From Laetmonice hystrix (Eukaryota), in contig OZ249448.1 of the NCBI GenBank assembly GCA_965235115.1, positions 23,994,001 to 24,058,000 on the forward strand: a DNA stretch of 64,000 nt, written 5' to 3'. This document shows, piece by piece, positions 306 through 53,171 of the stretch. A program made the position numbers and the translations under genes. Each line of letters starts with the position of its first letter. The first letter of the stretch is position 1. Under the pieces are notes generated by a model that was not told the DNA's origin, made no database searches, and saw only the letters and a list, made by a program, of their open reading frames with translations.

Positions 306-3300
306 CTGGTGGATGTGGAGATCCTTACATAATGACCCCCAACAGGAATGGAAATGATGGATCCCGGAGATCAGCATTCACAACATTAGAGGCATGTAAA
401 AGAGCTTGTCGCATTGACACAGCATGCATGGCTCTAGACTTTGATACGAGTATATCAGGCGGATGCTTTTTCTTCACGGATGCCAATTATGTACTGCAAT
501 CCACATACCAGGCTACCATTAACCATTACAAAAAGAAGCCAGAATGTGGAGGAGGTACCACAGGAGGTAAGCTGTAAAATTTCTTAGTGATGTTGACATT
601 AATTTTCCCTTTGTAAGGCTAAAAACGACAGTGCCTCTGAAAGAAGGGCTTGAATTAAAATGTGTTTTGATGATATTTACATCGGGACAGGGTAAAGTTT
701 CTATTAAAGAGTACACTTTACTAAATTTATACATGACAGAGAAAAAGTAATTTCTTCCCCTCAGACCTAATGTTATTTTTTAGGGGAATGGCAGATCTCA
801 CCAATTTAATTACTCAATTACTTTCTACCAATGGTTTGAGAGGACTTTTGAAACCATAGAAAAAATACAAGCAATCACCGTTTTCAACCCATAGGGCAGC
901 TGCATTTAACTTGCAACGTCATAACACAGTGCTGCAAGATAAAGTTAGCGCCACAGAAAACGATATCTAGACATATAATTTGTTTCTAGCTGGTGGATGT
1001 GGAGATCCATACATAATGACCCCGAACAGGAATGGAAATGATGGATCCCGGAGATCAGCATTCACAACATTAGAGGCATGTAAAAGAGCTTGTCGCATTG
1101 ACACAGCATGCATGGCTCTTGACTTTGATACGAGTATATCAGGTGGATGCTTTTTCTTCACGGATGCCAATTATGTACTCCAATCCACATACCAGGCTAC
1201 CATTAACCATTACAAAAAGAAGCCAGAATGTGGAGGAGGTAGCGGTACCACAGCAGGTGAGCTGTAAAGACTTTGTTGGCCTATGTTGACATTAAGCTTC
1301 TCTTCATTAGATGCCGCTGTGCCTATGAAAGCAGGACTTCGATTGAAACAATTGCTTTTCAAATATTTTTAACATATTCAACATATTAATACGAAAGACT
1401 GCATATTGCTTTGTTGAGAATGAAAGAAAGTCTGGGCGCATTATGACCAATATCTTTTATTAGGAGAAGGCCTGAGGGGAGATTTGAACCTTACTGTCAT
1501 TACTTTCTACCAATGTTTTGATAGCCATTTCAAAAAGATGGGGAAAAATGAAAGGTATCCTCGTTTTCAACTCATCAACCAGCAGTATTTCACTTGGAAC
1601 TGAGTAAAGCAGTACTGCAAGATAAAAAGACCACCAGAAAATGATAGCTAAGGGTACAGATTCACGGCAGTGACAAAAGTATATTGGATTGTAGCTGGTG
1701 GATGTGGAGATCCTTACATAATGACCCCGAACAGGAATGGAAATGGTGGATCCCAGAGATCAGCATTTACAACATTAGAGGCATGTAAAAGAGCTTGTCG
1801 CATTGACACAGCATGCATGGCTCTAGACTTTGATTCGAGTATATCAGGTGGATGCTTTTTCTTCACGGATGCCAATTATGTACTCCAATCCACATACCAG
1901 GCTACCATTAACCATTACAAAAAGAAGCCAGAATGTGGAGGGGGTACCACAGGAGGTAAGCTGTAAAATTTCTTAGTGAGGTTGACATTAATTTTTCCTT
2001 TGTAAGGCTAAAAATGACAGTGCCTCTGAAAGAAGGGCTTGAATTAAAATGTGTTTTGAGGATATTTACGTCGGAACAGGGTAAAGTTTCTATTAAAGAG
2101 TACACTTTACTAAATTTATACATGACAGAGAAAAAATATTTTTTCCCTGCAGACCTAATGTTATTTTTTAGGGGAAAGGGAGATCTCACCAATTTAATTA
2201 CTCAATTACTTTCTACCAATGGTTTGAGAGGACTTTTGAAACCATAGAAAAAATACAAGCAATCACCGTTTTCAACCCATAGGGCAGCAGCATTTAACTT
2301 GCAATGTCATGACACAGTGCTGCAAGATAAAGTTAGCGCCACAGAAAACGATATCTAGACATATTTGTTTCTAGCTGGTGGATGTGGAGATCCATACATA
2401 ATGACCCCCAACAGGAATGGAAATGATGGATCCCGGAGATCAGCATTCACAACATTAGAGGCATGTAAAAGAGCTTGTCGCATTGACACAGCATGCATGG
2501 CTCTAGACTTTGATACGAGTATATCAGGTGGATGCTTTTTCTTCACGGATGCCAATTATGTACTCCAATCCACATACCAGGCTACTATTAACCATTACAA
2601 AAAGAAGCCAGAATGTGGAGGAGGTAGCGGTACCACAGCAGGTGAGCTGTAAAGACTTTGTTGGCTTATGTTAACATTAAGCCTCCCTTCATTAGATACC
2701 ACTGTGCCTATGAAAGCAGGACTTCGATTGAAACAAATGCTTTTAAAATATTTTTAACATATTTAACATATTAATACAAAAGACTGGATATTGCTTTGCT
2801 GAGAATGAAAGAAAATCTGGGCGCATTAGGACCAATATCTTTTATTAGGAGAAGGCCTGAGGGGAGATTTGAACCTTACTGTCATTGCTTTCTACAAATG
2901 TTTTGATAGCCATTTCAAAAAGATAGGGGAAAATGAAAGGTATCCTCGTTTTCAACTCATCAGCCAACAGTATTTCACTTGGAACTTAGTAAAACAGTAC
3001 TGCAAGATAAAAATGACCACCAGAAAATAATAGCTAGGGGTACAGATTCCCAGCAGTGACAAAAGTATATTTGATTGTAGCTGGTGGATGTGGAGATCCT
3101 TACATAATGACCCCCAACAGGAATGGAAATGATGGATCTCGGAGATCAGCATTCACAACATTAGAGGCATGTAAAAGAGCTTGTCGCATTGACACAGCAT
3201 GCATGGCTCTAGACTTTGATACGAGTATATCAGGCGGATGCTTTTTCTTCACGGATGCCAATTATGTACTGCAATCCACATACCAGGCTACCATTAACCA

Positions 3301-6300
3301 TTACAAAAAGAAGCCAGAATGTGGAGGAGGTACCACAGGAGGTAAGCTGTAAAGACTGTGTTGGCTTTCCTAGTAAAGACTTTGCTTTGCTGAGAATGAA
3401 AGAAATGACTGATCACATTAAATTCAGTGTATGTTTTTACCAGAAGGAGGGAAGCGTTGACCTTTTACCATAAGTGCCATCATTAATTTTTACCAATGTT
3501 TTGAGAGTCATTTCGAAGACATAGGGAAAATGGAAGCTGTCTCCGTTTTCAACTCATAGGCTAGCTGTATTTCACTTGGAACTTCGTAAAGCCATATTGC
3601 AAGATAAAAACGACCACCATACAATGGAAGCTAGAGCTACAGATTCCCAGCAGTGACAAAAGTTTATTTGTTTTTAGCTGGTGGATGTGGAGATCCATAC
3701 ATAATGACCCCCAACAGGAATGGAAATGATGGATCCCGGAGATCAGCATTCACAACATTAGAGGCATGTAAAAGAGCTTGTCGCATTGACACAGCATGCA
3801 TGGCTCTAGACTTTGATACGAGTATATCAGGCGGATGCTTTTTCTTCACGGATGCCAATTATGTACTGCAATCCACATACCAGGCTACCATTAACCATTA
3901 CAAAAAGAAGCCAGAATGTGGAGGGGGTACCACAGGAGGTAAGCTGCAAAATTTCTTAGTGAGGTTGACATTAATTTTTCCTTTGTAAGGCTAAAAATGA
4001 CAGTGCCTCTGAAAGAAGGGCTTGAATTAAAATGTGTTTTGAGGATATTTACATCGGGACAGGGTAAAGTTTCTATTAAAGAGTACACTTTACTAAATTT
4101 ATACATGACAGAGTAAAAATATTTTTTTCCCTGCAGACCTAATGTTATTTTTTAGGGGAAGGGAGATCTCACCAATTTAATTACTCCATTACTTTCTACC
4201 AATGGTTTGAGAGGACTTTTGAAACCATAGAAAAAATACAAGCAATCACCGTTTTCAACCCATAGGGCAGCTGCATTTAACTTGCAACGTCATAACACAG
4301 TGCTGCAAGATAAAGTTAGCGCCACAGAAAACGATATCTAGACATATTTGTTTCTAGCTGGTGGATGTGGAGATCCATACATAATGACCCCCAACAGGAA
4401 TGGAAATGATGGATCCCGGAGATCAGCATTCACAACATTAGAGGCATGTAAAAGAGCTTGTCGCATTGACACAGCATGCATGGCTCTAGACTTTGATACA
4501 AGTATATCAGGTGGATGCTTTTTCTTCACGGATGCCAATTATGTACTCCAATCCACATACCAGGCTACCATTAACCATTACAAAAAGAAGCCAGAATGTG
4601 GAGGAGGTAGTGGGACCACAGCAGGTGAGCTGTAAAGACTTTGTTGGCTTATGTTGACATTAAGCTTCCCTTCATTAGATGCCCCTGTGCCTATGAAAGC
4701 AGGACTTCGATTGAAACAATTGCTTTTCAAATATTTTTAACATATTCAACATATTAATACGAAAGACTGCATATTGCTTTGCTGAGTATGAAAGAAAATC
4801 TGGGCGCATTAGGACCAATATCTTTTATTAGGAGAAGGCCTGAGGGGAGATTTGAACCTTACTGTCATTACTTTCTACCAATGTTTTGATAGCCATTTCA
4901 AAAAGATAGGGAAAAATGAAAGGTATCCTCGTTTTCAAGTCATCAGCCAACAGTATTTCACTTGGAACTTAGTAAAACAGTACTGCAAGATAAAAATGAC
5001 CACCAGAAAATAATAGCTAGGGGTACACATTCCCAGCAGTGACAAAAGTATATTTGATTGTAGCTGGTGGATGTGGAGATCCTTACATAATGACCCCCAA
5101 CAGGAATGGAAATGATGGATCCCGGAGATCAGCATTCACAACATTAGAGGCATGTAAAAGAGCTTGTCGCATCGACACAGCATGCATGGCTCTAGACTTT
5201 GATACGAGTATATCAGGTGGATGCTTTTTCTTCACGGATGCCAATTATGTACTGCAATCCACATACCAGGCTACCATTAACCATTACAAAAAGAAGCCAG
5301 AATGTGGAGGAGGTAGTGGGACCACAGCAGGTGAGCTGTAAAGACTTTGTTGGCTTATGTTGACATTAAGCTTCCCTTCATTAGATGCCCCTGTGCCTAT
5401 GAAAGCAGGACTTCCATTGAAACAATTGCTTTTCAAATATTTTTAACATGTTCAACATATTAATACGAAAGACTGCACATTGCGTTGCTGAGAATGAAAG
5501 AAAATCTGGGCGCATTAGGACCAATATCTTTTATTAGGAGAAGGCCTGAGGGGAGATTTGAACCTTACTGTCATTACTTTCTACCAATGTTTTGATAGCC
5601 ATTTCAAAAAAATAGCGAAAAATGAAAGGTATCCTCGTTTTCAACTCATCAGCCAACAGTATTTCACTTGGAACTTAGTAAAACAGTACTGCAAGATAAA
5701 AATGACCACCAGAAAATAATAGCTAGGGGTACAGATTCCCAGCAGTGACAAAAGTATATTTGATTGTAGCTGGTGGATGTGGAGATCCTTACATAATGAC
5801 CCCCAACAGGAATGGAAATGATGGATCCCGGAGATCAGCATTCACAACATTAGAGGCATGTAAAAGAGCTTGTCGCATCGACACAGCATGCATGGCTCTA
5901 GACTTTGATACGAGTATATCAGGTGGATGCTTTTTCTTCACGGATGCCAATTATGTACTGCAATCCACATACCAGGCTACCATTAACCATTACAAAAAGA
6001 AGCCAGAATGTGGAGGAGGTAGCGGTACCACAGCAGGTGAGCTGGAACGACTGTGTTGGCTTATTCCGATATTACTCTTCCCGTCATTGAAAACCACAAT
6101 ATCTATTAAATCAGGGCATGGATTGAAATAAGTACTTTTAGAATGTATTCAATGCAATCCAGTGTTGGCTTTCCTAGCAAAGACTTTGTTTTGCTGAAAA
6201 TGAAAGAAATGACTGATCACATTAAATTCAGTGGTTTTTTTTATTAGAAAGAGGGAAACATTTACCTTTTACCATAAGTGCCATCATTAATTTTTTACCA

Positions 6301-6749
6301 ATGTTTTGAGAGTCATTTCGAAAACATAGGGAAAATGGAAGCTGTCCCAGTTTTTAACTCATTGGCTAGCTGCATTTCACTTGGAACTTCGTAAAGCCAT
6401 ATTGCAAGATAAAAATGACCACCATACAATGATAGCTAGAGCTACACATTCCCAGCAGTGACAATAGTATATTTGTTTTTAGCTGGTGGATGTGGAGATC
6501 CATACATAATGACCCCAAACAGGAATGGAAATGGTGGATCCCGGAGATCAACATTCACAACATTAGAGGCATGTAAAAGAGCTTGTCGCATCGACACAGC
6601 ATGCATGGCTCTAGACTTTGATACGAGTATATCAGGTGGATGCTTTTTCTTCACGGATGCCAATTATGTACTGCAATCCACATACCAGGCTACCATTAAC
6701 CATTATAAAAAGAAGCCAGAATGTGGAGGGGGTAGCGGTACCACACCAG
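306..6749 (+). CDS. PAN/Apple-domain exon array, block I: 10 near-identical phase-1 exons
   Basis: Exons 306-566, 990-1256, 1695-1955, 2375-2641, 3081-3341, 3678-3938, 4358-4624, 5064-5330, 5770-6036, 6483-6749 (261 or 267 nt). Each has an AG acceptor and a gtaag/gtgag donor and encodes GGCGDPY...TLEACKRACRIDTACMALDFD...GGCFFF...NHYKKKPECGGG (6 Cys, C-x3-C-x5-C core typical of PAN/Apple). The ORF-track starts (MTKVY, MFLA) are intronic. Sequence 1-305 is a copy of the same intron, so the array continues upstream. Confidence 0.9.
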
Positions 6750-7135
6750 GTGAGTTTAAGTGTTCGCTCTTTACTCCTCATTTAGTGTGTTTATTCTTTA
6801 TATTTCATGTTTTACTAAAAATGACTCCAAGTTTATGTTGAGGCTCCAACATTACAGTTTTGTTAGCTAGAAAGAAAAAATAAGGAAATGGTGTCTTCAC
6901 AAGAGATGCCAGATTTAGTTCCAAGTTTCCATTTCTATTACCTGCTACGGCTCATTAGTGTTAACAGCTGCTTTTGAAAAGAATTTTGAAAACAGGAAAA
7001 AACTGGAACAATACCAATCTTCCACTGGTAGGTTAACTATATCTATGACATACAACTTAACAATAATGCAGGAGATTGCCCCAAAATGTTGGACATCAAT
7101 GATCCCAGTTGTGACAATAGTATATTATATTTTAG

Positions 7136-7387
7136 TTGGAGGATGTGCAGACCCGTACATAATGACTTCAAACAGAAATGCAAGGGATGGAATTCCAAAA
7201 CCAGCATTCAGAACATTAGTTGCATGCAAAAGTGCTTGCCGGACCGATGCAACATGCTTGGCACTCGACTTTGATACCAGCATATCAGCCGGATGTTATT
7301 TCTTCACAAATCCTAATTATCAACTTCAAACCATTTACCAGCCTAACATCAATCATTACAAAAAGAAGTCGGAATGTGGAGGTACAG
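7136..7387 (+). CDS. PAN/Apple-domain exon (variant)
   Basis: tttag acceptor and ACA G|gtgagc donor, 252 nt, phase 1-1. Encodes GGCADPYIMTSNRNARDGIPKPAFRTLVACKSACRTDATCLALDFD...SECGGT. Confidence 0.88.
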
Positions 7388-7620
7388 GTGAGCAAAACAT
7401 TTTGACGGGTTAACCAATCTTTGACCAGTATCTATTCTGTTGGTTACACACCTCACTACGTCTGAAGGTACTTGCAAGGAGCATTTTCAGTATTATCAAA
7501 CGTCTTGTACTGAGATGACATTTCAGATGACTGTATAAAAAGACTGCCTTTGTAAAGAGTTCTGTAATTTAGACAGACATTGAGGATTTCCAGCCGTGAC
7601 AAAGGTATGTTTCATTATAG

Positions 7621-7881
7621 CAGGAGGATGTGCAGACCCATACATAATGACACCCAACAGAAATGGAAATGGTGGAAACCGTCGACCTATATTCACAACA
7701 TTGGAAATGTGCAAAAGTGCATGCAAAACTGATAGTGGATGTTATGGTCTTGATTACGACACCAGAGCCAACACTGGGTGTTACTTCTTCACTAACTCCA
7801 ACTATAATATGGAAACAACTTACCAACCTACCATTAACCACTACAGAAAGAAAGCAGCGTGTGGGGGACCTGGTGGGACAG
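7621..7881 (+). CDS. PAN/Apple-domain exon (first copy of the NRRPIF type)
   Basis: ttatag acceptor and G|gtgagc donor, 261 nt. Encodes GGCADPYIMTPNRNGNGGNRRPIFTTLEMCKSACKTDSGCYGLDYD...AACGGPGGT. Confidence 0.88.
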
Positions 7882-8459
7882 GTGAGCTCATGAGAAATTC
7901 ATAATGAAGGACGTCAACGTTTATCATAATGAAGTTTTTATCTTTGAAAATATAACATCAGGCGGCAGCAGGCCCTGGGAGGCTCAGAAGTCATAAAGCT
8001 GTAACCAAACCTACTAATATCTGCATTGTCATATCAAAAGATTATTTTGTCGATAAGGTAAAATGAAGAATTGGCATTTAATTCTGAGTTTGGTGAGGTA
8101 ATTAGGAGGGGACATGGGTCGATGTAGTTGACCATGACAGATTAAAATATGCTGTCAAATACCACTGCTCTGCCTTACGACTGGACGGGGGATTACATAA
8201 AAGAGAAAGTTAAGGTCACAATTTCTTTGTTAGATTATTAGTTTACCTTAAGGAGCAGGCGTTTCAAAAGAGGGAAACACTTAGTATATGTTGTATGAAA
8301 GTTTATCTTAAAATGGCAGTAAACAAATGAAGAAGCATTGCATAAATGTATACACTGTGAAACTCTCCATACGATTGTCGGCCCAAGCAAAATAAGAAAT
8401 TCTAAGTCACGTATATGTTAAATTTCGTTGAAGACATATATCATTTTTCACTCTTATAG

Positions 8460-8711
8460 GATCATGCACAGACACATATGTTCCGTACAGTAAAACTAGC
8501 GGTAGCAATGGTGTCCTTCAAAGCGATATAGGAACAGATGCAGGATGCCGGCAAAGATGTTCAAGTAGAACATGTTATGGATATGAATTCAACGCCATTC
8601 GTAACGTCTGTCAACTTTACACTGTGGAGAACATTGTGATCAATAACTCAGGCGGGGCCCTTGGGGTAACACTGTACAAAAAGACCACAAATAATTGCAT
8701 CCCAAATTCAG
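8460..8711 (+). CDS. Divergent PAN/Apple exon inside the array (absent from the ORF track)
   Basis: ctcttatag acceptor at 8459 and TCA G|gttagt donor at 8712; 252 nt, open, phase 1-1. Encodes (G)SCTDTYVPYSKTSGSNGVLQSDIGTDAGCRQRCSSRTCYGYEFNAIRNVCQLYTVENIVINNSGGALGVTLYKKTTNNCIPNS, with all six PAN cysteines. Confidence 0.85.
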
Positions 8712-8931
8712 GTTAGTTCTGTCTTTATAATAGATAATTCTCAGAAACCTGACAATATATGCAATTATCTGCTTTTATTATCTCACTGTGCCTAAAATAG
8801 ACATTTCACCTTTATAGAGAATGTTCCTGCTGAAGTATTAATTTTAAAAGTTCCTGCATCACTTAAGATCATTAGAGTGAAGTGTGATCTATGACGTTTG
8901 ATATCATTTTGACTGAATCCTTCTACTGTAG

Positions 8932-11900
8932 AATGTGCAGATCCATACATCATGACTGCAAACAGAAATGGAAATGGTGGAAACCGTCGACCTATATTCA
9001 CAACATTGGAGATGTGCAAAAGTGCATGCAGAACTGATAGTGGATGTTATGGTCTTGATTACGACACCAGAGCCAACACTGGATGTTACTTCTTCACTAA
9101 CTCCAACTATAATATGGATACTACAAATCAACCGACCATTAACCACTACAGAAAGAAGGCAGCGTGTGGGGGACCTGGAGGTACAATTTTTACCCCTGGT
9201 CTGATCCACCAGATTTTGTCTCCACCTTATAAGCAGCCAAGCGTACAAGACTATACAGTTAGGGTAGTATATGGAAATGTAGTTGTGACTCAGGAGGGGG
9301 TGTTCGTGTGGGCCAAAGTAAGTTAAAAGCCATAGTTTAAAAGGAGTGTATTATATTCCCTTTCTTAACCTAATAAATTTAGATGAAAGAAACAAATTCA
9401 TGTATAAACTATTTTCTATGTATAGTTTTGATGATTCATTGCAGGCAGACATATATCTGTCTTATTTGCTTACTTATTATGGTATTAACTCCTATTTGTA
9501 GCTGGAGAATGTGCAGATCCATACATAATGACTGCCAACAGAAATGGAAATGGTGGAAACCGTCGACCTATATTCACAACATTGGAGATGTGCAAAAGTG
9601 CATGCAGAACTGATAGTGGATGTTATGGTATTGATTACGACACCAGGGTCAACACTGGGTGTTACTTCTTCACTAACTCCAACTATTATATGGAAACAAC
9701 TTACCAGCCTACCATTAACCACTACAGAAAGAAGGCGGCTTGTGGTGGACCTGGAGGTACACTCTTTTCTGTTCTGCTATGTCATTCTTTTGGAAAGAAT
9801 CAGCTCCAATATTTATTAAATTTGTTCGTGAAATAGGGGGAGGGATTATAGAGTTGAACCAAAGGAACTCTAAATGTCCCTCCAGGGGTTTACCTAGAGG
9901 GACATGGAAACATAGGTGCCACAGTCTTAAGTTACGGTATCTCAGGCCAAATTTATAAAGAATGACAATGGTTTCAATGTTTCTTTATAGCTGGAGAATG
10001 TGCAGACCCATACATAATGACTGCCAATAGAAATGGCAATGGTGGACTCCATCAGGCAGAACTCAGAACATTGGAGACGTGTAAAAGTGCATGCAGAGCT
10101 ATTAGTGGATGTTATGGTATTGATTACGACACCAGGGCCAACACTGGGTGTTACTTCTACTCTGACTCCAACTATAATATGGGAACAACCTACCAGGCTA
10201 CCATTAACCACTACAGAAAGAAGGCAGCATGTGGTGGACCTGGAGGTACACATTTCCCCTGATCAGATCTGACATTTTTTGTTTACATTGAACAAGCAGT
10301 CCGACTGGCAGGATTGTAACCAGTTACAGTAAAATATAAAAATATCACAGAAAACCAGGAGGGGTGGGGGGAATCAGGTGGGCAAAAGGAATTTGAAAAA
10401 CCACTGTAAAAAAATGGACCTGGGTTTCCTCTATCTATCCATAGAGATGAAAGGGGTTAATCCACGTTTAAACTACCCTACCATAAGTAGTTTTGACAAT
10501 TCATAATATGCGGACAGACTTGTCTTTATTTTGGGGATCTAACATAAAATACAAAGACTTATTTTGGTATCACTCTTCTTTATAGCTGGAGGATGTGCAG
10601 ATCCATACATAATGACTGCCAACAGAAATGGAAATGGTGGAACGCGGAGACCTATATTCACAACATTGGAGATGTGTAAAAGTGCATGCAAAAGTGATAG
10701 TGCATGTTATGGTCTTGATTACGACACAAGACCCAACACTGGGTGTTTTTTCTTCACTAACTCCAACTATTATATGGAAACAACTTACCAGGCTACAATT
10801 AACCACTACAGAAAGAAGGCAGCGTGTGGTGGAACCGGAGGTATGCTTTTCCCCGTTGTGCTCTGCCTATAATTCCTCTTCTTATTGTTCTTTCTTTCTT
10901 CTATAAAGTATAGCTTATCTGACTGGAAGGTTCATAAATAGAACGCCAGTGGCAAAGGAGATCAATGTGGTATCCGTTTACCTCTCTGTATAGCTGAACG
11001 AGATACAAGTTTCACCCATTAAAAGGTTCAGGATTTCATAGACGCCAAACAGAAACATACATGCTACAGCCTTCATTGATGCATCTAAGACGAAATGCAA
11101 AGATTAATTATAGCATCAACTCTTTTGTTTCTAGCTGGAGAATGTGCAGATCCATACATCATGACTGCAAACAGAAATGGAAATGGTGGAAACCGTCGAC
11201 CTATATTCACAACATTGGAGATGTGTAAAAGTGCATGCAAAAGTGATAGTGGATGTTATGGTCTTGATTACGACACCAGAGCCAACACTGGGTGTTACTT
11301 CTTCACTAACTCCAACTATAATATGGATACTGCAAATCAACCGACTATTAACCACTACAGAAAGAAGGCAGCGTGTGGGGGACCTGGAGGTACACACTTT
11401 TTTTCCTGGTCAGATCTTTTTTGTTTACATTGTACAAGCAATCCAACTGGCAGGTCTGTAACAAGTTGCAGCAGAGCTGCCTATTTGTCGCCATATGTCG
11501 CATTTTGGAGCGACAACAACGCAAATGTGATGAAAAAACAAAGTGCCAGATTGAATTAGGAACGCAGGACTATCTGTCGCATCATTGGTTTTGGAGATGC
11601 CCTAGTGATCCATGAAAGTCAAAGCACAGTAACGACGCATTTAATCTCTCGGGAGTAAGCGAAAGAGACAGAGAGTACCTTTTTGGGGTAAGGTTTGGCA
11701 GATTTGATTTTAATCCGAACAGATTATACTCGGACGGCTGTGTCCCAACATCTCTGCCACCTACTCTTACCCCCTTTCTTGCAAAATAGCTTTTATTATG
11801 CTGAGGTTGACAGTTTTGGTGCGCACATTTGGATGTGCTACACACTAAGCAGCCATAATTTTGGATAGCCCAGTACAGTAGAATATGAAAATATCACAGT

Positions 11901-13717
11901 GAACGGGGGAGGGGGGGGGGAGGGGGAATCAGGTAGGCAAAAGGAATTTGAAAAGCCACTTTAAAAAAAGATGGATCTGGTTTTCCTCTACCTTTCCATC
12001 GAGATGAAAGAGGTAAAAGTATGTTTAAGCTAGGTTTGGGTGATTCATAGACTGCAGACAGACGTGCCTTTAATTTTGGCTTTGGAAACTGGGTTTTCAC
12101 TTGTAGGTTTCCGTTATCCATTTCCGTTATCCCTTTCCAATTCGATTGTTTATACCTATTTTCTCATGCGAGCGTTTCCATGTACTTTTCATAGTCTGAT
12201 TATTCACGTGGAAATGCTACCATAGGAAATAGGCATAAACGATTGAACCGGGAACAGATAACAGAAATGAATAATGGAAACACATACATGGAACCGCGGG
12301 TTAACACAGAATATGAAGACTCATTATGGTATCAATTCTTCTTTATAGCTGGAGGATGTGCAGATCCGTACATCATGACTGCCAACAGAAATGGAAATGG
12401 TGGAAACCGTCGACCTATATTCACAACATTGGAGATGTGCAAAAGTGCATGCAAATCTGATAGTGGATGCTTTGGACTTGATTATGATACAAGACCCAAC
12501 ACTGGGTGTTTTTTCTTCACTAACTCCAACTATAATATGGAAACAACTTACCAGCCCACCATTAACCACTACAGAAAGAAGGCAGCGTGTGGTGGAACTG
12601 GAGGTACACTCTATCATTCTTTTGGGAGTAATCAGCTACAATATAAATAAAATGTGTGTGTGTGGGGGGGGGGGGATTACAGAGTTGAGCCAGAGGAACT
12701 CTAAATGCCAATGCAAAAAGGTATCTATATAATATCACATTATCTGTCTGTCTGCACATAGTAGATGAAAGAGCTAAAGTCATAGGAACATAGGTGCCAC
12801 AGTCTTAACTTGCGGCATCTCAGACCAAATTTATAAAGAATGACAATGGTTTCAATGTTTCTTTATAGCTGGGGAATGTGCAGACCCATACATAATGACT
12901 GCCAATAGAAATGGAAATGGTGGACTCCATCAGGCAGAAATCAGAACATTGGAGACGTGTAAAAGTGCATGCAGAGCTACTAGTGCATGTTATGGTATTG
13001 ATTACGACACCAGGGCCAACACTGGGTGTTACTTCTACACTAACTCCAACTATAATATGGCTACTACCTATCAACCGACCATTAACCACTACAGAAAGAA
13101 GGCAGCATGTGGCGGACCTGGAGGTACACATTTCCCCTGATCAGATCTGACATTTTTTGTTTACATTGAACAAGCAGTCCGACTGGCAGGATTGTAACCA
13201 CTTACAGTAAAATATAAAAATATCACAGAAAACCAGGAGGGATGGGGGGAATCAGGTGGGCAAAAGGAATTTGAAAAACCACTGTAAAAAATGGACCTGG
13301 TTTTCCTCTATCTATCCATAGAGATGAAAGAGGTAAATCCACGTCTAAACTACCCTACCATAAATAGTTTTGACAATTCATAATATGCGGACAGACTTGT
13401 CTTCATTATTGGGATCTAACATAAAATACAAAGACTTATTGTGGTATCACTCTTCTTTATAGCTGGAGGATGTGCAGATCCATACATAATGACTGCCAAC
13501 AGAAATGGAAATGGTGGAACGCGGAGACCTATATTCACAACATTGGAGATGTGTAAAAGTGCATGCAAAAGTGATAGTGCATGTTATGGTCTTGATTACG
13601 ACACAAGACCCAACACTGGGTGTTTTTTCTTCACTAACTCCAACTATTATATGGAAACAACTTACCAGGCTACCATTAACCACTACAGAAAGAAGGCAGC
13701 TTGTGGTGGAACTGGAA
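8932..13717 (+). CDS. PAN/Apple-domain exon array, block II: 8 exons
   Basis: Exons 8932-9180, 9502-9756, 9991-10245, 10586-10840, 11135-11389, 12349-12603, 12869-13123, 13463-13717 (249-255 nt, phase 1-1). Donors are gtacaa/gtacac/gtatgc, several weak. Same 6-Cys pattern as block I. Confidence 0.85.
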
Positions 13718-14015
13718 GTATGCTTTTCCCCGTTTTGCTCTGCCTTTAATTCCTCTTCTTATTGTTCTTTCTTTCTTCTATACAGTATAGCTTATCTGAC
13801 TGGAAGGTTCATAAATAGTTAGAACGCCAGTGGCAAAGGAGATCAATGTGGTATCCGTTTACCTCTCTGTATAGCTGAACGAGATACAAGTTTCACCCCT
13901 TTAAAGGTTCAGGATTTCATAGACGCCAAACAGAAATGTACATGCTACAGCCTTCATTGATGCATCTAAGACGAAATGCAAAGATTAATTATAGCATCAA
14001 CTCTTTTGTTTCTAG

Positions 14016-15689
14016 CTGGAGGATGTGCAGATCCATACATCATGACTGCAAACAGAAATGGAAATGGTGGAAACCGTCGACCTATATTCACAACATTGGA
14101 GATGTGTAAAAGTGCATGCAAAAGTGATAGTGGATGTTATGGTCTTGATTACGACACCAGAGCCAACACTGGGTGTTACTTCTTCACTAACTCCAATTAT
14201 AATATGGAAACAACTTACCAGCCTACCATTAACCACTACAGAAAGAAGGCAGCGTGTGGTGGACCTGGGGGGACAGGTGAGCCAAAGATTAAAAAAAAGT
14301 GGCAAAATTGATAGTGTGTGTCTTTGCCTGTGTATGGATGAAACAGGAAAATCTGTTTCGGTTATTTATTGATTGGGAATTTCAGAAAGGCCAAACTTAA
14401 AAACAGTTTCTACCAGTAAAGTCTTTATTTGTAGCATCAGCGGCCAAATACAAAGTATACTCATAGCATCAACCCTTTTGTTTCTAGGTGGACAATGTAC
14501 AGACCCATACATAATTACTACCAACAGGAATGGAAATGGTGGAAACCGTCGACCTATATTCACAACATTGGAGATGTGTAAAAGTGCATGCAAAAGTGAT
14601 AGTGCATGCGTTGGTTTTGATTACGATACCAAAGCCAACACTGGGTGTTACTTTTTCACTAACTTCAACTATAATATGGGAACAACCTACCAGGATACGA
14701 TTAACCACTACAGAAAGAAGGCAGCGTGTGGTGGACCTGGGGGGACAGGTGAGCCAAAGATAAAAAAAATGGCAAAAAAGATATTGTAGCTCTTTGCCTG
14801 GCTCTAGATGAAACATGAAAAATTGTTTTAGTTGTTTATTGATTGGGAAATTTCATAAAGGTCAGACAGAAAAACAGATGCTACCAATAAAGTCTTTATT
14901 TGTAGCATCAGGGGCCAAATACAAAGATTAATTATAGCATCAACTCTTTTGTTTTTAGCTGGTGAATGCACAGATCCGTACATAATGACACCCAACAGAA
15001 ATGGAAATGGTGGAAACCGTCGACCTATATTCACAACATTGGAAATGTGTAAAAGTGCATGCAGAACTGATAGTGCATGTTATGGTATTGATTACGACAC
15101 CAGGGCCAACACTGGGTGTTACTTCTTCACTAACTTCAACTATAATATGGGAACAACCTACCAGGATACGATTAACCACTACAGAAAGAAGGCAGCGTGT
15201 GGTGGACCTGGGGGGACAGGTGAGCCAAAGATAAAAAAATGGCAAAAAAGATATTGTAGCTCTTTGCCTGGCTCTAGATGAAACATGAAAAATTGTTTTA
15301 GTTGTTTATTGATTGGGAAATTTCATAAAGGTCAGACAGAAAAACAGATGCTACCAATAAAGTCTTTATTTGTAGCATCAGGGGCCAAATACAAAGATTA
15401 ATTATAGCATCAACTCTTTTGTTTCTAGCTGGAGAATGCACAGATCCATACATAATGACTGCCAACAGAAATGGAAATGGTGGAAACCGTCGACCTATAT
15501 TCACAACATTGGAAATGTGTAAAAGTGCATGCAGAACTGATAGTGCATGTTATGGTATTGATTACGACACCAGGGCCAACACTGGGTGTTACTTCTACAC
15601 TAACTCCAACTATAATATGGGAACAACTTACCAGGATACGATTAACCACTACAGAAAGAAGGCAGCGTGTGGTGGACCTGGGGGGACAG
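14016..15689 (+). CDS. PAN/Apple-domain exon array, block III: 4 exons at about 471-bp spacing
   Basis: Exons 14016-14276, 14488-14748, 14959-15219, 15429-15689 (261 nt each), with ag acceptors and ACA G|gtgagc donors. Confidence 0.88.
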
Positions 15690-16941
15690 GTGAGCCAGGG
15701 GAGCCCTTGTTCTCAGAACTATCCATCAGGGGGCACTGCATAAGTACTCAGCTGAAAAATTTAGTGGCATGCATGCACTGTTTGTGGTCTAACATGTCAT
15801 GTTAGGCAGTCCTACTTAGGATTTATGAGCCCTTTGATTATATGGAAATGTGGCCGAGGAACTTTTGCAGAAAAGTTGGAAATAAGGGAATTGAGCGTGG
15901 GTTGTTGGAAGATAGACGGGTCAGAAGACAGGCCCATACCTAAGCTAAATCATACAATCTCAATATGATTTCCACCAACCGAAGGACTGCATGCCGGGTA
16001 AAATCGTGTAGAGAGATGTTTATCTTTTGATCAACATGACATCTGATGGATTGATTTTAGGGTCAAGGGCAAGTTGTCTTTTAACATGTAGTGGAAGAAA
16101 CAGTATATCTGGAAATAGATAAATTATTAATCGGTTAAATGGCTTATCATCACTAGATAGACAAATTTCTTCTTCCGTCTTTGTTAGTGCAGGTAAAGTC
16201 GAGGAAATGATAATGCACGGGTTTTCTGTATATCGAGGAAATATGAGTGTTGATTGGTTTTTGTTTTTGGTATTTATTTTGTCATGAATATGTACATTTA
16301 TGTTCCATATAATTATTTCATTACATGCATGTCATTAATACTTGTTAAACCTGTTAATGTCTACGCCTTTTAATGGAGAGAGCCTCAGGGACTGAGAAAA
16401 TTTGTATACTGTGTATCCTAGAGCAAAGTGATGTCATTGTTGGAAATGTGTAACATTTGTACGATCTCTGTTAATTTCAGCCCGGGATGCAGCCTGTTAC
16501 AGTTTACATCCAACCACCTAGCTCCTGGATTGCAATATATGATATTGGGGTTTTTTTATTGTTGTGAAATAGCGATACTTCCTTTTTATTAACTTAAACT
16601 TTCAGCATAATGGTCTGCTAAATGACTTTTTAGAAATTGGTTACCAACAGCAACATGTGCCGTTTTCGCTGTTGTTCGGGTAAGGTATAAGTTTTCATAT
16701 ACGATATCTCATCGATAACGTCTGGAAATGTAGTTTGTCGCAAACTCATCCTAATATTAAAAACACATAATAGTCATTACTATGATTACTTCTCGGTGAT
16801 ATAGAGTTAGTATACAATTTTATTAGAAACAGAGCCAACCCTGTAGTGTTTTATACAAACTCTCAAACATAGCGTCGGCCAGAGACTTAATTTTTTGTTA
16901 TGCCATGATGTGTACTAAATCATCCAATTTTCACCAATCAG

Positions 16942-17205
16942 TTGGGTGCGTTGAGAGCTTCAACACGATCGAGAACCGGCATGCTTTTAATGGAATCCGG
17001 GTAGCGGCGGACACCTTCGAATTATGCCAGCAGCTCTGTCGAACGGGCACAGGTCCTCAGTTCTGCTACGCGCTCGACTTTAACACCATTGAAAGGGAAT
17101 GCTTCCATCACCGACAAGCGGACTTCATAGTTGACCCCAAGACAACTCCTGGGATTCGCCACTCCATCAAAGTTCTTTGCCCGTCGACGACAACCACGGC
17201 TCCTG
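16942..17205 (+). CDS. Divergent PAN/Apple exon
   Basis: atcag acceptor and CCT G|gtttgt donor, 264 nt. Encodes GCVESFNTIENRHAFNG...ELCQQLCRTGTGPQFCYALDFN...ECFHH...VLCPSTTTTAP. Confidence 0.82.
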
Positions 17206-17368
17206 GTTTGTGTCCTTTTATTCACTTCCTCCCCCCGTGTTAGTTCATTTTTCAGATGCAGTCAAGGACCCAAGGACACCACCCTGTCGCCAAAGTAGCA
17301 GCTGGCGTAGCTGCACGTTGAATACTGAACGCAGCTCACGCTTTGCTATTGTGTTGAATTTCCTACAG

Positions 17369-17626
17369 GTGAATGCCGAAGGAGGTACAATTGGAACCCC
17401 AATTATCATGTTAACGGTGGGCTTGAACAGTTTGTCACCATAACAAAACAAGAGGAGTGCCAATCGCGGTGTGATAACAGACCTCTGGGTCTTAAGTGTT
17501 ACGGATATGATTTCGATAGGATAAACCTGAAGTGTTACCTCTTCCATAATAGTGTACTTGGCACTATGGAACGCCTCAATGGTGTTGACCACTATCGCTT
17601 ACAAGCATGCGTCGCAAGACTGCAAG
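17369..17626 (+). CDS. Divergent PAN/Apple exon (absent from the ORF track)
   Basis: tcctacag acceptor and CAA G|gttaga donor, 258 nt. Encodes GECRRRYNWNPNYHVNGG...EECQSRCDNRPLGLKCYGYDFDRINLKCYLFH...GVDHYRLQACVARLQ. Confidence 0.85.
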
Positions 17627-17897: not shown

Positions 17898-18133
17898 CAG
17901 GTGTATGTGGTGACACGTTTAGGCTTGTCGCCAATAGAAACGGTTTGAATGGTCAGGCCGTAAATGCCACCACGCCCAACGAATGCCATCAGTCGTGTGT
18001 AAAGGACAGCAGAAGATGTACTGGCTTTGACTGGATCCCTGAGGGCAACACAATGTCATGTTATTTGTTGTTCTCGAAGGAAACAAATCCGAGCAGCTCA
18101 CGCGTCGACCATTACGAAAGGGACTGCTCTTAA
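17898..18133 (+). CDS. PAN/Apple exon ending in a stop codon (terminal exon)
   Basis: NAGNAG acceptor (ccag cag; exon start 17898 or 17901). Encodes GVCGDTFRLVANRNGLNG...NECHQSCVKDSRRCTGFDW...SCYLLF...VDHYERDCS followed by TAA. No GT donor lies between the last Cys and the stop. Confidence 0.8.
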
Positions 18134-18647
18134 GCCGTTTTCTTAACACAAGCCTCTGCTCACCACCCTTATGTGACAGAATATGTTGACATTGAAAGTA
18201 CCAGTCCATCATGATGTATCTGCATCAAAGCATGGTTCACCAGGATTTTCAGCAGGTGCATGTGGGAAATTAGTAGCCCATTCCACCAATATATGCAGGG
18301 AACTGGTCAACCCATACCTGTCGACTTACTGTTGAAACCGTAGAGAAAGGGGAGTGGAAAAGGGGGTTGTTCAAACCTTGCCATGCGCGGGTTTATTTCT
18401 GTGTCGATGGCACAGAAATGGGTATGTATGGAGTGTGGAGAGACCGTGGTCAATGGGCGGATCTTTTATCTTGACCATTTTAAACCTGGAGACGTTTATG
18501 GTGTCTCACGGATAGTATATATTCAAGATGAAAAGACAGGATGTGAACAGATGTAAGGGGACCGTTGACATTTAAGCTGCTAGACGCGTATGTGAAAATG
18601 AATGTATTGAGAGAGAGCAAGATGTTGAGATTCCCGTCCAAGTTCAG

Positions 18648-18831
18648 ATAGTGTGTATTATAGACACGTGCGACCACACAGTGTGTATTATAGACAGGTG
18701 CGGCCACACAGTGTGTATTATAGACAGGTGCGACCACACAGTGTGTATTATAGACAGGTGCGGCCACACAGTGTGTATTATAGACAGGTGCGGCCACACA
18801 GTGTGTATTATAGACAGGTGCGACCACACAG
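18648..18831. repeat. 30-bp minisatellite, about 6 copies
   Basis: Tandem unit cacagtgtgtattatagacaggtgcggcca. It explains the repetitive ORFs at 18480-18884. Confidence 0.95.
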
Positions 18832-20598
18832 ACATACGATTGTCGCATTACCTAGTGGTTTATTTTAATAATAATACAAACTAAAGTTACTGATGTACAC
18901 CTTGTAGATTAAACTAAAGCTTTAAAATACAGGATGAATGTAACAACCATTAAATTAACTTTAGCTGGTGGTATCGCCGTATTAAGGTGTCTGCCTGCTT
19001 CTGCGTTCCAGCTATGTGGACGTAATATTACCAGATCAACCTGTCAGTCCGGCAGTTGGTCTGACATTGTTAACTAACTTAAAATCCGCAAGAGACCATA
19101 GAAATGGCTGGAGAATCGAGAATTATGGTGAGCCCAGCGTGAGTTTGGAAACCGTCGTTGTTCGCTGTCGGACTGTCCTGTCCCGCAGTCAGTGGCGTTG
19201 CTATAGAAACACTTTCAGTTGGGCTCCACCACATCCATACATGTCTTAGGGGCGGACCATTTGATACGGGGGGGCTGTGTTTTTTCATCATGAGAAAACT
19301 TTTTTTCCCCATTTCGACTATACCATATATTTTTTTTTACATAGGGAACCAACTATTTTTTTTATGTAGTTTGATGAACAAACTATTTTTTCCTGTATTT
19401 GGTGAACAGATAATTTTTTTTTCAGAAAAAAGCATAGATCGCTACCGTGTTAATAGAGTTGTTGAGAATATCAAAGTGGGTCCTCCTCATACTCCCCAAA
19501 CTTAGGTTAGGGATTCAGCCTAATTATTCAATTTTCTCGACAGTGGTATTCCAGACTTGACTATGAAACTGATCTACATAGTGGGATCGCAGTTTCTATA
19601 GCCCGTCGTTTTAACTTCTCCTAAGTTTCATAGGATATGAATTGTTTAGCGTCATTACAATTCGCGCTAAATTATTTCACCTGTGCAAATTACCGAAGTG
19701 TGTTATCTGGTAATGGGAAACATAGGAACACTGAATTTACAATTTATGATCTTTATTACGCTGGAAACTAGAAATAAAACCATTTGTAATAAATGTTGTG
19801 TCGTTGAAACCGATCCTTGTTTCAAGAGTTCATGAGAAAAGTTTACTTTTGGGGGATAACCCCAAAGGGGATATTGCCCAGTTTTTGAGCAACCCGATGA
19901 ATTATGGATTAGGATATTCTCGATTGGCCTGGTTCAACCAAAAATGGTTGTAAAAGAAGCAAGTTTGACGCCGATTAGACTGATAACGGATTAAGATGTC
20001 ATGGTCCAATGGACTCGAGCCATTCGGTTCAGACAGCGAGAGCAGTTGGCCTAGAGTTTGGTGTGACGTGATTGGTTGCATGGTGCAAGGACCGTTGATG
20101 TGATTGGTTGTCTTGGTGATGGATTACAATGGGACAGACGCGCCTTGTGGAGATGTTTTGGAATCTCATGAACTCGGTCAGTACAGTAGCATAGAGTAAT
20201 ATAGTTAGCCCTCCCCCCTCCCACCCCTTAGTCTATACAGTTCGATTTCTGTCGTATACTATGTTGACATAGTTTTTCTTCTGTAATTTGTTCTGCATTG
20301 AAGTCTTTTGCATGGCATTGCCCCCATTTTAAAAGAATTACACGTGTCACGTGACACATTGCCTGTCTAGCACTGGGCAATTGTATTTTGTCTTCATCGT
20401 GGCTAAGGTTAGGCCCACAGGATAGCGGATGAGTCTACATCTACAGTTTGGAAGGGCAGTGCCGAGAGGTGTTGGTAACATTGTTTTATGTATGGTTTCT
20501 GTTCTGAGCCCTTGGTCTGAACACTTGGTACTTTATTACTGCGGGCTGTATGCTGCTATAGTACCTCGTAGAACCCCTTCCTCCCGTCCCTCAATCAC

Positions 20599-21040
20599 CA
20601 GGGTTCGTAGCGGTCCTAGAAACCCTGGAAATCATGGCATTTGATAACCCATTTTCCATGAAAGTCATGGAAGTTTGCATCAGGTCATGGAAAGTCATGG
20701 AATTTGAAATTTGGGGGAAATCATTGCCTGTTTGGGAAAATGAAAAATAGGGACCCCAATTCTGGTTGCAGATTTGTTCATAAATAATTAATATAATGAC
20801 AAAGAATCTCAATGTCTTCTACCCTATCAGAGCCGTAGATAGAGAGCAAAGCGACCCCAAGTGAGTAGGGTGGGAACTACCCCCTTAGCGACTCTAGCGG
20901 TTATGCACTGCATAGCATCCACACTGGCTTATTCCCACCAAAACTTATAGCACAGCTAGTCCTGGAAAAAGATGACCAGGTCCTGGAAAAAGTCCTGGAA
21001 AGTCCTGGAGTTTTATTGTCATGAGAAGCTACGAACCCTG
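20599..21040. mobile_element. Non-autonomous DNA element (hAT-like MITE)
   Basis: 13-bp perfect terminal inverted repeats CAGGGTTCGTAGC...GCTACGAACCCTG, with subterminal short repeats (catggaaa, cctggaaa). No target-site duplication was found. Confidence 0.6.
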
Positions 21041-21423
21041 ACCGCTAGCGGGCCTTTTGTTGTAGGATGTCGTGTATTGTGTCAGCACTTGATACCCGTA
21101 AAATAACGAGTGACGTTTCCCCGACCTTCAGTCTGTTCTGACGATAGAGAACTCGCAATGGTAGAGCTGGCATACCACAGGCAATCTTTCGTCTCCCATC
21201 CTGACGACCCCATTCTATTCTAGCCATCTACCTTCGCTCTTCTCGGATTCCCCATCTGGTGTAGACATCGGTTTAGATGGTTCTGAATTCGTTTCTTGGT
21301 GCGAGTTTCCACAAAATCGACACACCCGCCTATGGCTTTAAAGTTAAATTTCTTTGTGCTGCTTACCAGATTGACTCAGTTTCCAAATTGCATCAGTTAG
21401 TGTATCATGCTTTATTTCTGCAG

Positions 21424-21441
21424 CGTCAAGTCCACAACCAG
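21424..21441 (+). CDS. 18-nt linker micro-exon (ASSPQP)
   Basis: tttatttctgcag|cgtcaagtccacaaccag|gtaggt; phase 1-1, open, Ser/Pro linker. Confidence 0.55.
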
Positions 21442-23075
21442 GTAGGTAATACATAGGTTGATATGATAGGATTTACCAGTTTCATGTAAGTGTATTCACA
21501 GACAATGAAGCGGGCCTGGACTAATCATCACTTTACTCCTAGGTAATAAGGATGGTATCGGCATCTTCTTTTGGTAATAAACGTAGCTGTACACAGATAT
21601 AAGTACCGCTAAGCATGTCGACTTTGTTCAAAACAGTTACACTTTGTGAAATGGAGAGTAGGGTTAAGTCTACAGTAGTGGGGTGTCTTGGAATGTCTTG
21701 TTGCTAATGGTAACGTGAACAAAAGGAAAGAGAGGAGATATTTATATATATCCTTGATGACCTGCTCAATCTGCTCGTCCGACTGGTAGATTGTTGGTGT
21801 TACGTTCAAGGAGTCATGTTCAGTCAGAAATCCGAACTTATATGTGACCAGAAAACATCTTCCAAGTTATTGCGGCAAATGTGCATTATTGATATTCTTT
21901 ATCCAAAACGTATTTCGGCAATATTTGGTTTATCGGTTAGGAACTCAGACATCCATCTCCTCATTTTTTGTCTGGCAAGCTCAGTATCAATCAAAAGTTT
22001 TATTATACAATTGTTACCGTAAGGGGGAGGGGGTTCCCTGTTCATGATTCGTAAACGGAACTTCGACCTACTACGTGTCATCTTGCGTTGAAAAGGTACC
22101 TTCCAGCATGGGCAATATGCATGTTTTTGATGGCAAATGTAGTTTTGAGTGTGATGGTCGATGCATTATGACAACAATGCCATACACATTAAGCATGTAT
22201 GAAGAACTTTGACTGTCATACGTGTTTTGAAGTTCCATAATACCATACAATTGGATTTTAAGGAACCTTGACTTCTTTGGCAACAAGAACAGCTAAGGAT
22301 TTCTAACAGTTGTTTTCCAGGATCAAGATATCTGTCAATGCGGAATTTATCGCCTTATAATGATATTGTCTGTTTTGCTTGTATAAACATCAGGAATGCC
22401 GTATTACTGGATTTTATTTTGTAATTCTATACACCAAAAATTGGGTCAAGTAGACCGTTTTCATTTGTATCGGTGGGTATGATTGTTTAAACTGTTGATC
22501 GTTGTCTTGGTAACATCCGACAACTTTGGGGCGGGGGGGGGGGGGTAAGGCATGTTGTAATAGGTGTGTAGATTTAAAAGGAGACGATCAAGATGGAATC
22601 AGAATTTAAGAATATACGATTAGCCCGTGCGTTTATTAATTTAGGACACGTTTCAGTTGTTCAGATTTTCTCGCTTACGGTTAAGTATACACAAAATCCT
22701 GGCGTTGTACTAGATTCGAGTGTTCATTTGTTTGATTCCTTAAAGGTAAAATATAGGAATGTGTAACCTTAAAGGCAAAATGTGAAGCGCCACCTAGTGA
22801 GTCGCGTTGGTACCACGGGGGAAATGTGAATATTCAAAGCGCCGCGTAGTGAGCTTTAACAGAAAAATGGTTGGCTTATTTATGCAGTCAACTACTTTGA
22901 TGTGGAAATCAGTAGTATTTTTTAAACCATGAGCCAAACTCTGTGCCAGAACCTGTCTACTCCAATGAATGCTATAGTTAAGACCCGTGGTTGACCTTAA
23001 AACACTAGAGACCTCAATATGGTAAAACCGTGAACGGCGGCCACATATTGACACTTGTCGGTTTGGTTTATGCAG

Positions 23076-23309
23076 CATGTCGGGACAACTACCGCCCGGT
23101 GAGGGACAAACTACGGCTAGGAGGTGTCGCCTACCCTCAGGGAGATCCATCCCCGGCTGCCTGCGAGAACGCCTGTAATGAAGTGAACGATTGCTACGGC
23201 TTCGACTACGACAGAGGGAGACGTGAATGTTTCCGCCATCTTGAGGCTTACGATGACTCGGAGCTACAGGACGGTTCCGGGGTGGATAACTATCGAAGGC
23301 TACGTGTCT
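23076..23309 (+). CDS. PAN/Apple exon
   Basis: tgcag acceptor and T|gtacgt donor, 234 nt. Encodes ACRDNY...AACENACNEVNDCYGFDYD...ECFRH...GVDNYRRLRV. The last Cys codon is split across the intron. Confidence 0.8.
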
Positions 23310-23805: not shown

Positions 23806-24033
23806 CCACGGGCTGCACAATATCGAAGGGCGCCGACGGTTTTTCTATTGGAGGGACGATCCGGGATACCATTAATACTGAGGCCGAGTGTGCCCGAAGT
23901 TGTCTGGCTGATGTCAACTGCATTGCCGTAGACTTCAACTATGCTGCACGTGGGTGCTACCACCACACGCAGGACGTAGTTCAAGATGTCCAGCCCAATT
24001 CCTGCTGTGCAAGATATGAGAAAACGTGCCCAG
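23806..24033 (+). CDS. PAN/Apple exon
   Basis: tttcag acceptor and CCA G|gtagac donor, 228 nt. Encodes TGCTISKGADGFSIGG...AECARSCLADVNCIAVDFN...GCYHH...SCCARYEKTCP. Confidence 0.82.
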
Positions 24034-24444: not shown

Positions 24445-24666
24445 GGTGTGTCCCAAGATTCGTGAGACGAGAAGGGAGAAACGCGCAAGGCGGAGTGGAA
24501 CAGCCGGGTGTGGTCACCTTGGAAGGATGCAGAGCTTCCTGTATCAGTGCCGATTGTTTCATGTTTGACTACGATTCTGCCTTCAACGGTTGCTTCCTGC
24601 ACTCTCAGAACAGGACGTTGAACCCGGTGCAGGGTGTCGATAACTTTCTCTACATAACATGTAATG
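24445..24666 (+). CDS. PAN/Apple exon
   Basis: tttcag acceptor and AAT G|gtaggt donor, 222 nt. Encodes GCVPRFVRREGRNAQGG...EGCRASCISADCFMFDYD...GCFLH...GVDNFLYITCN. Confidence 0.82.
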
Positions 24667-53013: not shown

Positions 53014-53171
53014 TNNNNNNNNNNNNNNNNNNNNNNNNNNNNNNNNNNNNNNNNNNNNNNNNNNNNNNNNNNNNNNNNNNNNNNNNNNNNNNNNNNNNNN
53101 NNNNNNNNNNNNNNNNNNNNNNNNNNNNNNNNNNNNNNNNNNNNNNNNNNNNNNNNNNNNNNNNNNNNNNN
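53014..53171. other. Assembly gap
   Basis: Run of N. Confidence 1.

Follow-up and report, generated by a model that had tools for sequence, protein, structure and literature searches.

In a window of 64,000 nucleotides from Laetmonice hystrix (contig OZ249448.1 of assembly GCA_965235115.1, forward-strand positions 23,994,001 to 24,058,000), the first 16 kb form a direct-repeat array of plus-strand exons, each of which encodes a PAN/Apple domain. Positions below are window coordinates; L008 and L011 denote stretches upstream of the window, and 70 kb upstream of it were examined. Repeat finding, tblastn and splice-site mapping agreed on 25 exons within 306-15689, with lengths of 249-267 nt that are all divisible by 3, and all in phase 1-1 (two codon-completing bases follow the acceptor AG and one codon base precedes the donor GT), as a sequence-only reading of the window had stated. 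The repeat unit measures 260-300 nt and recurs in register 23-24 times at a spacing of 470-713 nt; the spacing widens at three places, each occupied by a divergent exon or a long intron. Tandem Repeats Finder reported a tandem of 470-bp period (92%) at 13974-15697. With two copies as query, tblastn returned 24 close copies and a divergent 25th at 8460-8711, so the view of the exons as copies of one type held for 24 and failed for that one. Each copy is a single open frame between a pyrimidine tract with AG and a GT. Joined in order, the window exons gave 2,162 codons with 0 stops, and their lengths step by 3, in agreement with the claim that no copy carries a stop or frameshift. The span of 306-15689 proposed for the array does hold the 25 exons, but the array does not start at 306: 12 further copies lie directly upstream of the window (L008:2124-9890), which brings the array to 37 exons, 9,642 nt and 3,214 codons, again with no stop. 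The units run head to tail, exon plus intron, with identity continuing through the introns. These results show that the array is real, well delimited, coding and cut by the window edge.

Composition of the array and the encoded domain

Block I comprises 21 copies, 10 of them in the window; the 21 neighbouring domains are 94-100% identical, and 13 of the 21 cores are the same. In the window, eight of the ten copies encode this identical core, as had been noticed from the letters alone. They lie at 306-566, 3081-3341 and 3678-3938 (261 nt each) and at 990-1256 (linker 2 codons longer), 2375-2641, 4358-4624, 5064-5330 and 5770-6036 (267 nt each). The exon at 1695-1955 (261 nt) has 3 amino-acid differences from the consensus core, and the last block I exon, 6483-6749 (267 nt), has 2. 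A transitional exon follows at 7136-7387 (252 nt; ~70% identity to block I), and then the first exon of block II type at 7621-7881 (261 nt), with the strong donor CAG/GTGAGC. The exon at 8460-8711 (252 nt, phase 1-1) is a divergent six-cysteine PAN exon, only ~26% identical to the other array exons, and thus a separate PAN domain inside the array.

Block II continues at 8932-9180 (249 nt; acceptor shifted 6 nt downstream, donor GAG/GTACAA) and with a series of 255-nt exons, of which 9502-9756 (weak donor GAG/GTACAC) opens a duplicated unit of four. The other members of the first set are 9991-10245 (LHQAEL-loop variant, weak donor GTACAC), 10586-10840 (donor GAG/GTATGC) and 11135-11389 (weak donor GTACAC), which is followed by an intron of 959 nt. 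Their paralogues lie at 12349-12603 (of 9502), at 12869-13123 (of 9991; flanking introns 97% identical, 7 amino-acid differences), at 13463-13717 (of 10586; 2 synonymous differences) and at 14016-14276 (of 11135; 261 nt, strong donor). The last of these is also the first 470-bp tandem unit of block III, whose remaining exons, of 261 nt each, are 14488-14748, 14959-15219 and 15429-15689, the last of the array. Blocks II and III hold 12 distinct cores among 13 copies.

The array exon type was unique to this locus: a whole-genome search gave 36 matches, 0 with stops, and the next-best matches were exons spaced 2,040 bp apart, 23 Mb upstream. No processed, intron-less copy of the array was found in the genome search. 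An nhmmer scan over 104 kb gave the 36 copies and a few weak matches, nearly all within other intact PAN exons of the locus, and no decayed array-type copy. The earlier statement that decayed exons occur elsewhere in the locus was therefore not borne out for the array type by either search; the sole stop-bearing PAN exon is a divergent one, 17898-18130, possibly no more than a terminal exon.

Each array exon corresponds to one complete PAN/Apple domain and a short Gly/Thr linker. Against Pfam PAN_1, block I (exon 306-566) scored 22.6 bits with a cutoff of 21.4, block II 20.2 bits, just under it, exon 8460-8711 20.7 bits, and sister exons of the locus 22-30 bits. The cysteines at positions C3, C30, C34, C40, C53 and C80 are invariant in the array, apart from the first array exon, upstream of the window, and the same six are invariant or at least 90% conserved in a 73-sequence family alignment. 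Numbered in order of occurrence, they follow the six-cysteine PAN spacing with the pairs C1-C6, C2-C5 and C3-C4. The PAN/Apple family is described as having four to six cysteines, with a four-cysteine core also recognised (PMC9249922). The first array exon, L008:2124-2369, is 15 nt shorter and has lost the first and last PAN cysteines (C1 and C6) together, the pair expected to bond with each other; a four-cysteine variant thus heads the array.

The 73-sequence profile (A2) matched plasma kallikrein (1e-6), the HGF N domain, factor XI, leech LAPP and apicomplexan MIC4; a PDB sequence search with a narrow alignment (A1) gave no match. A first structure model from a shallow alignment was poor (predicted local distance difference test, pLDDT, 59), and the AlphaFold model with the deeper alignment A2 reached a pLDDT of 89.1. 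The model and its structural matches agree with the PAN fold, in which a central helix packs on an antiparallel sheet. The top 45 Foldseek matches in PDB were all PAN/Apple or related domains (template modelling score 0.53-0.68, best ~0.66; probability 0.95-1.0), among them HGF N, plasminogen, FXI A4, LAPP, SML-2, S-locus receptor kinase and MANEC, with E-values of only 6e-3 or weaker. Profile and model evidence together indicate that the array exons encode PAN/Apple domains.

Selection, duplication history and splice sites

The sequence-only reading had proposed a comparison of nonsynonymous with synonymous divergence (dN/dS) between copies. Pairwise dN/dS was 0.08 within block I, 0.23 within block II and within block III, and 0.16 between blocks I and II, which points to purifying selection. 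Because the copies share ancestry, distinct variants were each counted once. Block I then had 20 synonymous and 11 nonsynonymous variants (omega 0.16, p 3e-7), blocks II and III together had 39 and 45 (omega 0.31, p 5e-8), and 0 nonsense variants were seen against ~5.7 expected under neutrality. Exon lengths shift by multiples of 3 only, and same-type introns by 1-25 nt, with one type-c intron shifted by 110. The variant counts make a clear case for purifying selection on the array as a whole, and to that extent the claim of selection on every copy stands; for each young copy taken singly the power is too low and the claim is unproven.

Three types of intron occur in block I, with identities of 93-100% inside a type and ~70% between types, and some units are mosaic, combining introns as b-b, c-b or a-c; exon 5064-5330, for example, has a type-b intron on either side. 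Synonymous divergence (dS) between block I exons was ~0.10 across intron types that differ by ~0.29, the exons being ~3x more alike than their introns. Where the introns are of the same type and differ by 0.047, exon dS was 0.07, so the exons are without special synonymous constraint. These values indicate that block I exons were homogenised across unit types by conversion or by within-exon crossing-over. The interleaving of distinct variants in blocks II and III, which had been read as a possible basis for diversification, is real, but it arises because of a 4-exon segmental duplication in block II (9502-11389 versus 12349-14276; introns 27/31 and 28/32 are 97-98% identical) and the four-unit 470-bp tandem repeat that makes up block III. 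Some units are 99-100% identical, introns included. The split between blocks I and II is old (dS ~1.8), and both blocks are intact.

Blocks I and III carry strong splice sites (GAG/GTAAGC and CAG/GTGAGC). In eight block II exons the ancestral strong donor CAG/GTGAGC, retained in exon 7621-7881 and in block III, has been destroyed, and the sole in-frame donor is a GT 6 nt upstream (GAG/GTACAC, GTACAA or GTATGC). In the copy at 8926 the homologous acceptor AG has been lost, and the next AG, 6 nt downstream, gives the in-frame exon 8932-9180. At many acceptors the AG is paired in tandem with another at a distance of 6 nt (AG...AG). The introns around the strong sites of blocks I and III are short (209-446 nt), and the 959-nt intron 29 is the one long intron of the array. 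Unique intron segments of 7101-13100 were matched at 99-100% by independent DNA contigs from public runs, and Logan contigs of these runs break inside the repeated exons. Within intron 29, a form lacking 75 nt at 11527-11601 occurred in all three DNA runs with several loose ends, and the depth at 12101-12300 was ~10x that of neighbouring sequence, which suggests an indel polymorphism and a dispersed repeat.

The locus around the array

A copy-derived profile placed ~60 PAN exons, all on the plus strand, between 33.5 kb upstream of the window and 25958; within the 70 kb searched upstream there were no PAN exons beyond the 33.5-kb point. The 16 diverse upstream PAN exons and the downstream ones are likewise in phase 1-1. 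Downstream of the array, three divergent PAN exons of the same locus lie at ~16942-17238, 17369-17626 and 17898-18130, and four more in phase 1-1 at ~23076-23309, 23806-24033, 24445-24666 and 25735-26004. They are followed on the plus strand by four VWA coding stretches at 26757-27188, 29274-30053, 31272-31889 and 33165-33806 (VWA 21.5, 94, 144 and 124 bits, respectively) and by two C1q-like C-terminal stretches. The first of these, 36147-37304, resembles the tails of the Helobdella robusta protein T1FVV8 and of the open reading frame (ORF) of an environmental contig, L012, both described below; the second, 38881-40104, has a Pfam C1q match. The PAN, VWA and C1q-like parts thus stand in the order seen in T1FVV8, with a donorless, stop-bearing PAN exon between them.

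This exon, 17898-18130, has an in-frame TAA at 18128-18130 right after its last cysteine and no phase-1 donor, and ATTAAA motifs follow at 18908 and 18949. A heuristic scan of 18131-23075 found no convincing second signal-peptide exon. The exon could truly close the array's gene, serve as an alternative terminal exon, or be dead and skipped. At the other end, a candidate signal-peptide exon, L011:1254-1347, lies ~5 kb upstream of the first PAN exon; it has an ATG, a basic n-region, a 13-residue hydrophobic core, an A-x-A-like cleavage motif and a phase-1 donor CCA/GTAAGT. Its assignment as the signal peptide of the gene is suggestive only, and its weight is limited by the ~0.24 candidates per kb that the heuristic yields.

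Minisatellites with periods of 30-39 nt and 6-35 copies were present in introns and in the downstream region of the locus (18650-18831, 24932-25518, 41342-41643, 48166-48645 and 55604-56873), and 157 N at 53015-53171 mark a gap or masked sequence.

Use of the array and comparison with known systems

We consider it reasonably probable that the 37-exon array is used constitutively inside a giant secreted protein, where it would multiply one binding module. The array would have grown by repeated unequal crossing-over of 1-, 2- and 4-exon units, with gene conversion centred on the exons keeping it homogeneous and purifying selection keeping the copies translatable. The most likely mode would be ordinary splicing in sequence that retains all, or almost all, copies, and the product would contain a bead-on-a-string stretch of ~3,200 residues: 21 near-identical modules and, after them, 15 related ones. 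The predicted gene would run from the candidate signal peptide through ~16 diverse PAN exons, the array and more PAN exons to VWA and C1q-like domains. Over the whole locus the chain would count 21 nearly identical, 15 related and ~23 diverse PAN modules, and if the locus is one gene, the VWA and C1q-like domains could oligomerise it. PAN/Apple domains bind proteins or carbohydrates, for example in factor XI, LAPP and MIC4 (PMC7191736). A repeated module of this kind could provide avidity and reach towards a repetitive ligand such as matrix, mucus or a microbial surface. The identity of 13 of the 21 block I cores fits the supply of more of the same module better than diversification, and here the sequence-only reading, which had seen avidity over diversity in block I, was upheld. 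We infer constitutive inclusion, secretion and the avidity function of the array, as well as a probable polymorphism of its copy number.

Several observations weigh against this account. The donors of eight block II exons are non-consensus. In the three public runs over 7101-13100, all from one sample and none recorded as RNA, contigs crossed introns continuously with 0 splice joints, so that these runs represent genomic DNA. Among 1.84 billion representatives, no multi-domain protein was close to the array or resembled its spliced product. The in-frame stop at 18128-18130 between the array and the VWA/C1q part makes one continuous gene less certain. Finally, some exons of blocks II and III are more diverged than their introns, the reverse of block I: introns 34 and 35 (14749-14958 and 15220-15428) are 100% identical and the adjoining exons differ at 6-18 of 234 core sites, which may reflect either patchy conversion from other copies or diversification.

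The strongest rival, which we still regard as rather unlikely, is regulated or stochastic cassette skipping, in which subsets of exons, especially those of block II with weak donors, are left out and isoforms vary in PAN number and mix. Such isoforms would resemble the size isoforms of titin and nebulin, not a one-of-N choice. Weak splice sites are typical of regulated cassette exons, and the eight weak, shifted donors of block II fit this pattern. The tandem acceptors at many exons are a further point in favour of skipping, as are the 12 distinct cores in 13 copies of blocks II and III, with omega above that of block I, and the near-identical block I splice sites could pair out of order. Phase 1-1 throughout would make any skip frame-neutral and invisible to nonsense-mediated decay. 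However, this symmetry, which the sequence-only reading had seen as letting any subset splice in frame, is common to every PAN exon of the locus, so it is no evidence for cassette use and no special adaptation; phase 1-1 symmetry is the usual signature of domain-exon duplication. Short introns and strong sites in blocks I and III favour splicing from neighbour to neighbour, as intron definition would predict. Across blocks, no regulatory element of the introns was conserved, and the purifying selection, which extends to the weak-donor copies, argues that these are included often enough to matter. A bolder version, that the array is a splicing-programmable module from which each cell or tissue takes its own subset of the 37 exons, mainly the 12 block II/III variants with weak donors, seems to us improbable. 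If true, one gene would give many secreted recognition proteins of differing valency and specificity, an annelid innate-immune or adhesion diversity system that is Dscam-like in outcome and not in mechanism. No sequence feature that we examined supports combinatorial splicing.

Still less credit can be given to the idea that the stretch is recently amplified and unused, consisting of silent pseudo-exons or of a collapsed or expanded assembly artefact whose intactness merely reflects youth. In its favour, only DNA runs matched the stretch, units that are 99-100% identical including introns are too young to have decayed, and the breaks of Logan contigs inside exons leave the copy number without independent verification. 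Against it, synonymous variants exceed nonsynonymous ones relative to expectation even within block I, and there is no frameshift although same-type introns differ by indels. Blocks I and II are both intact despite their age, the acceptor shift and the donor shift both preserve the frame, and the unique intron segments of 7101-13100 were confirmed by independent DNA contigs. We therefore hold this explanation to be highly improbable.

The remaining rival is a Dscam-like mechanism, in which docking/selector RNA pairing would expose one or a few exons per transcript and cells would make different PAN repertoires. In Dscam, exon choice depends on a docking site complementary to a selector sequence beside each variant exon (PMC6071210). 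A check of the introns for such complementarity by k-mers, reverse-complement words, pairing scores and RNAduplex, as the sequence-only reading had suggested, gave nothing above controls; these were reverse and complement words, shuffles for ungapped pairing scores and dinucleotide shuffles for RNAduplex. No complementary word of at least 12 nt from the candidate flanking or long introns recurred in more than 2 array introns, and shorter recurrences matched the reverse and complement controls. There was no inverted-repeat system across the array introns, and the only element common to introns of different blocks was the acceptor tract. Apart from the tandem layout, one weak lead emerged: a G/U-rich 30-mer (L008:2010-2039), located ~8 kb upstream of the window in the intron that leads into the first array exon. 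The 30-mer can form duplexes of 12-16 bp, with ~4 wobble pairs each, with sites 19, 100 or 148 nt upstream of the acceptors in each of the three block I intron types. Its duplex score of 33 lies at the edge of the shuffled maximum (27-33), its RNAduplex energies are unexceptional, with 2-12 of 40 shuffles as good, and blocks II and III have no equivalent site; the pairing is probably chance helped by G/U promiscuity. Since every exon makes up an entire domain and brings its own linker, rather than being an alternative version of one segment, since the frame sets no penalty on double inclusion, and since choice among block I copies, 13 of 21 with identical cores, creates no diversity, a Dscam-like mechanism is very unlikely, the least probable of the readings.

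A word-index homologue search with one array exon gave no match; an exhaustive profile search returned distant multi-PAN proteins, including an Owenia match, and two single-exon ORFs from a related genome. In that genome a 459,865-bp contig (ENA ERZ26222911) carries tandem PAN ORFs of 80-135 residues, ~50-55% identical to the array, with a higher-order period of ~5 kb that is unlike the array here. The array type is thus not confined to this species, and separate lineages enlarge such arrays independently of each other. By architecture, the nearest relative that bears a name is Helobdella robusta T1FVV8 (XP_009029559.1, VWFA domain-containing protein), which, like the locus, has PAN domains (~17, some of them near-identical internal repeats), VWA, a Thr-rich linker and C1q-like domains, but has far fewer PAN domains and is distant from the array type (~108 bits over 17 stretches). 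The 6,934-bp contig L012 (JGI 3300036474) holds an uninterrupted ORF of 1,969 residues with 16 diverse PAN domains, a Pro/Thr-rich linker and two C1q-like domains, and may be a transcript-derived contig of a distant PAN-C1q family member; as evidence on splicing it was set aside, being only distantly related and without a poly(A) tail.

The locus offers a clean and extreme case of extracellular protein growth through amplification of a phase 1-1 domain exon. The 37 copies belong to three age classes, and selection can be measured in each; homogenisation is restricted to the exons, and the two frame-preserving 6-nt splice-site shifts show copies surviving the loss of a splice site. A run of 21 adjacent domains that are 94-100% identical is unusual among multidomain proteins, and in this non-model spiralian the locus therefore lends itself to tests of avidity, of how identical neighbours fold and of copy-number variation. 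The locus would represent a new mechanism only if transcripts show programmed exon choice.

Among known systems, titin and nebulin have long symmetric series of single-module exons whose differential inclusion tunes protein length; they are intracellular and muscle-specific with documented splicing, unlike the predicted secreted array protein. DMBT1 has up to ~14 SRCR domains, a count exceeded by the 37 exons of the array and the ~60 PAN exons of the locus. The Drosophila Dscam1 clusters of exons 4, 6 and 9 resemble the array in that duplicated exons of similar length stand in long tandem rows within one gene. They differ in that their exons are mutually exclusive versions of one segment, with conserved docking/selector RNA elements (PMC6071210), whereas the exons here are self-contained domains, many of them identical, and no docking/selector elements were found. 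Apolipoprotein(a), with the KIV-2 repeats of LPA, is closer: dozens of near-identical in-frame units, introns included, form one chain of disulfide modules, and adjacent domains are nearly 100% identical, as here (PMC11462820). The KIV-2 unit, however, has two exons in 5.6 kb, compared with 0.47-1.4 kb and one exon per domain here, and LPA represents a single young primate expansion, whereas three diverged blocks stand side by side in the array. DMBT1, also known as salivary agglutinin or gp340, is likewise a secreted glycoprotein built from tandem near-identical cysteine-rich single-domain exons; it evolved by unequal crossing-over, its SRCR repeat number is polymorphic, and its binding of bacteria changes with that number (PMC9038570). 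Its domain is SRCR and not PAN, and its polymorphism and bacterial ligands are demonstrated, whereas those of the array are inferred. Taken together, these comparisons place the array as a new and extreme amplified domain-exon array, in a predicted giant extracellular protein, of a kind that is already known.

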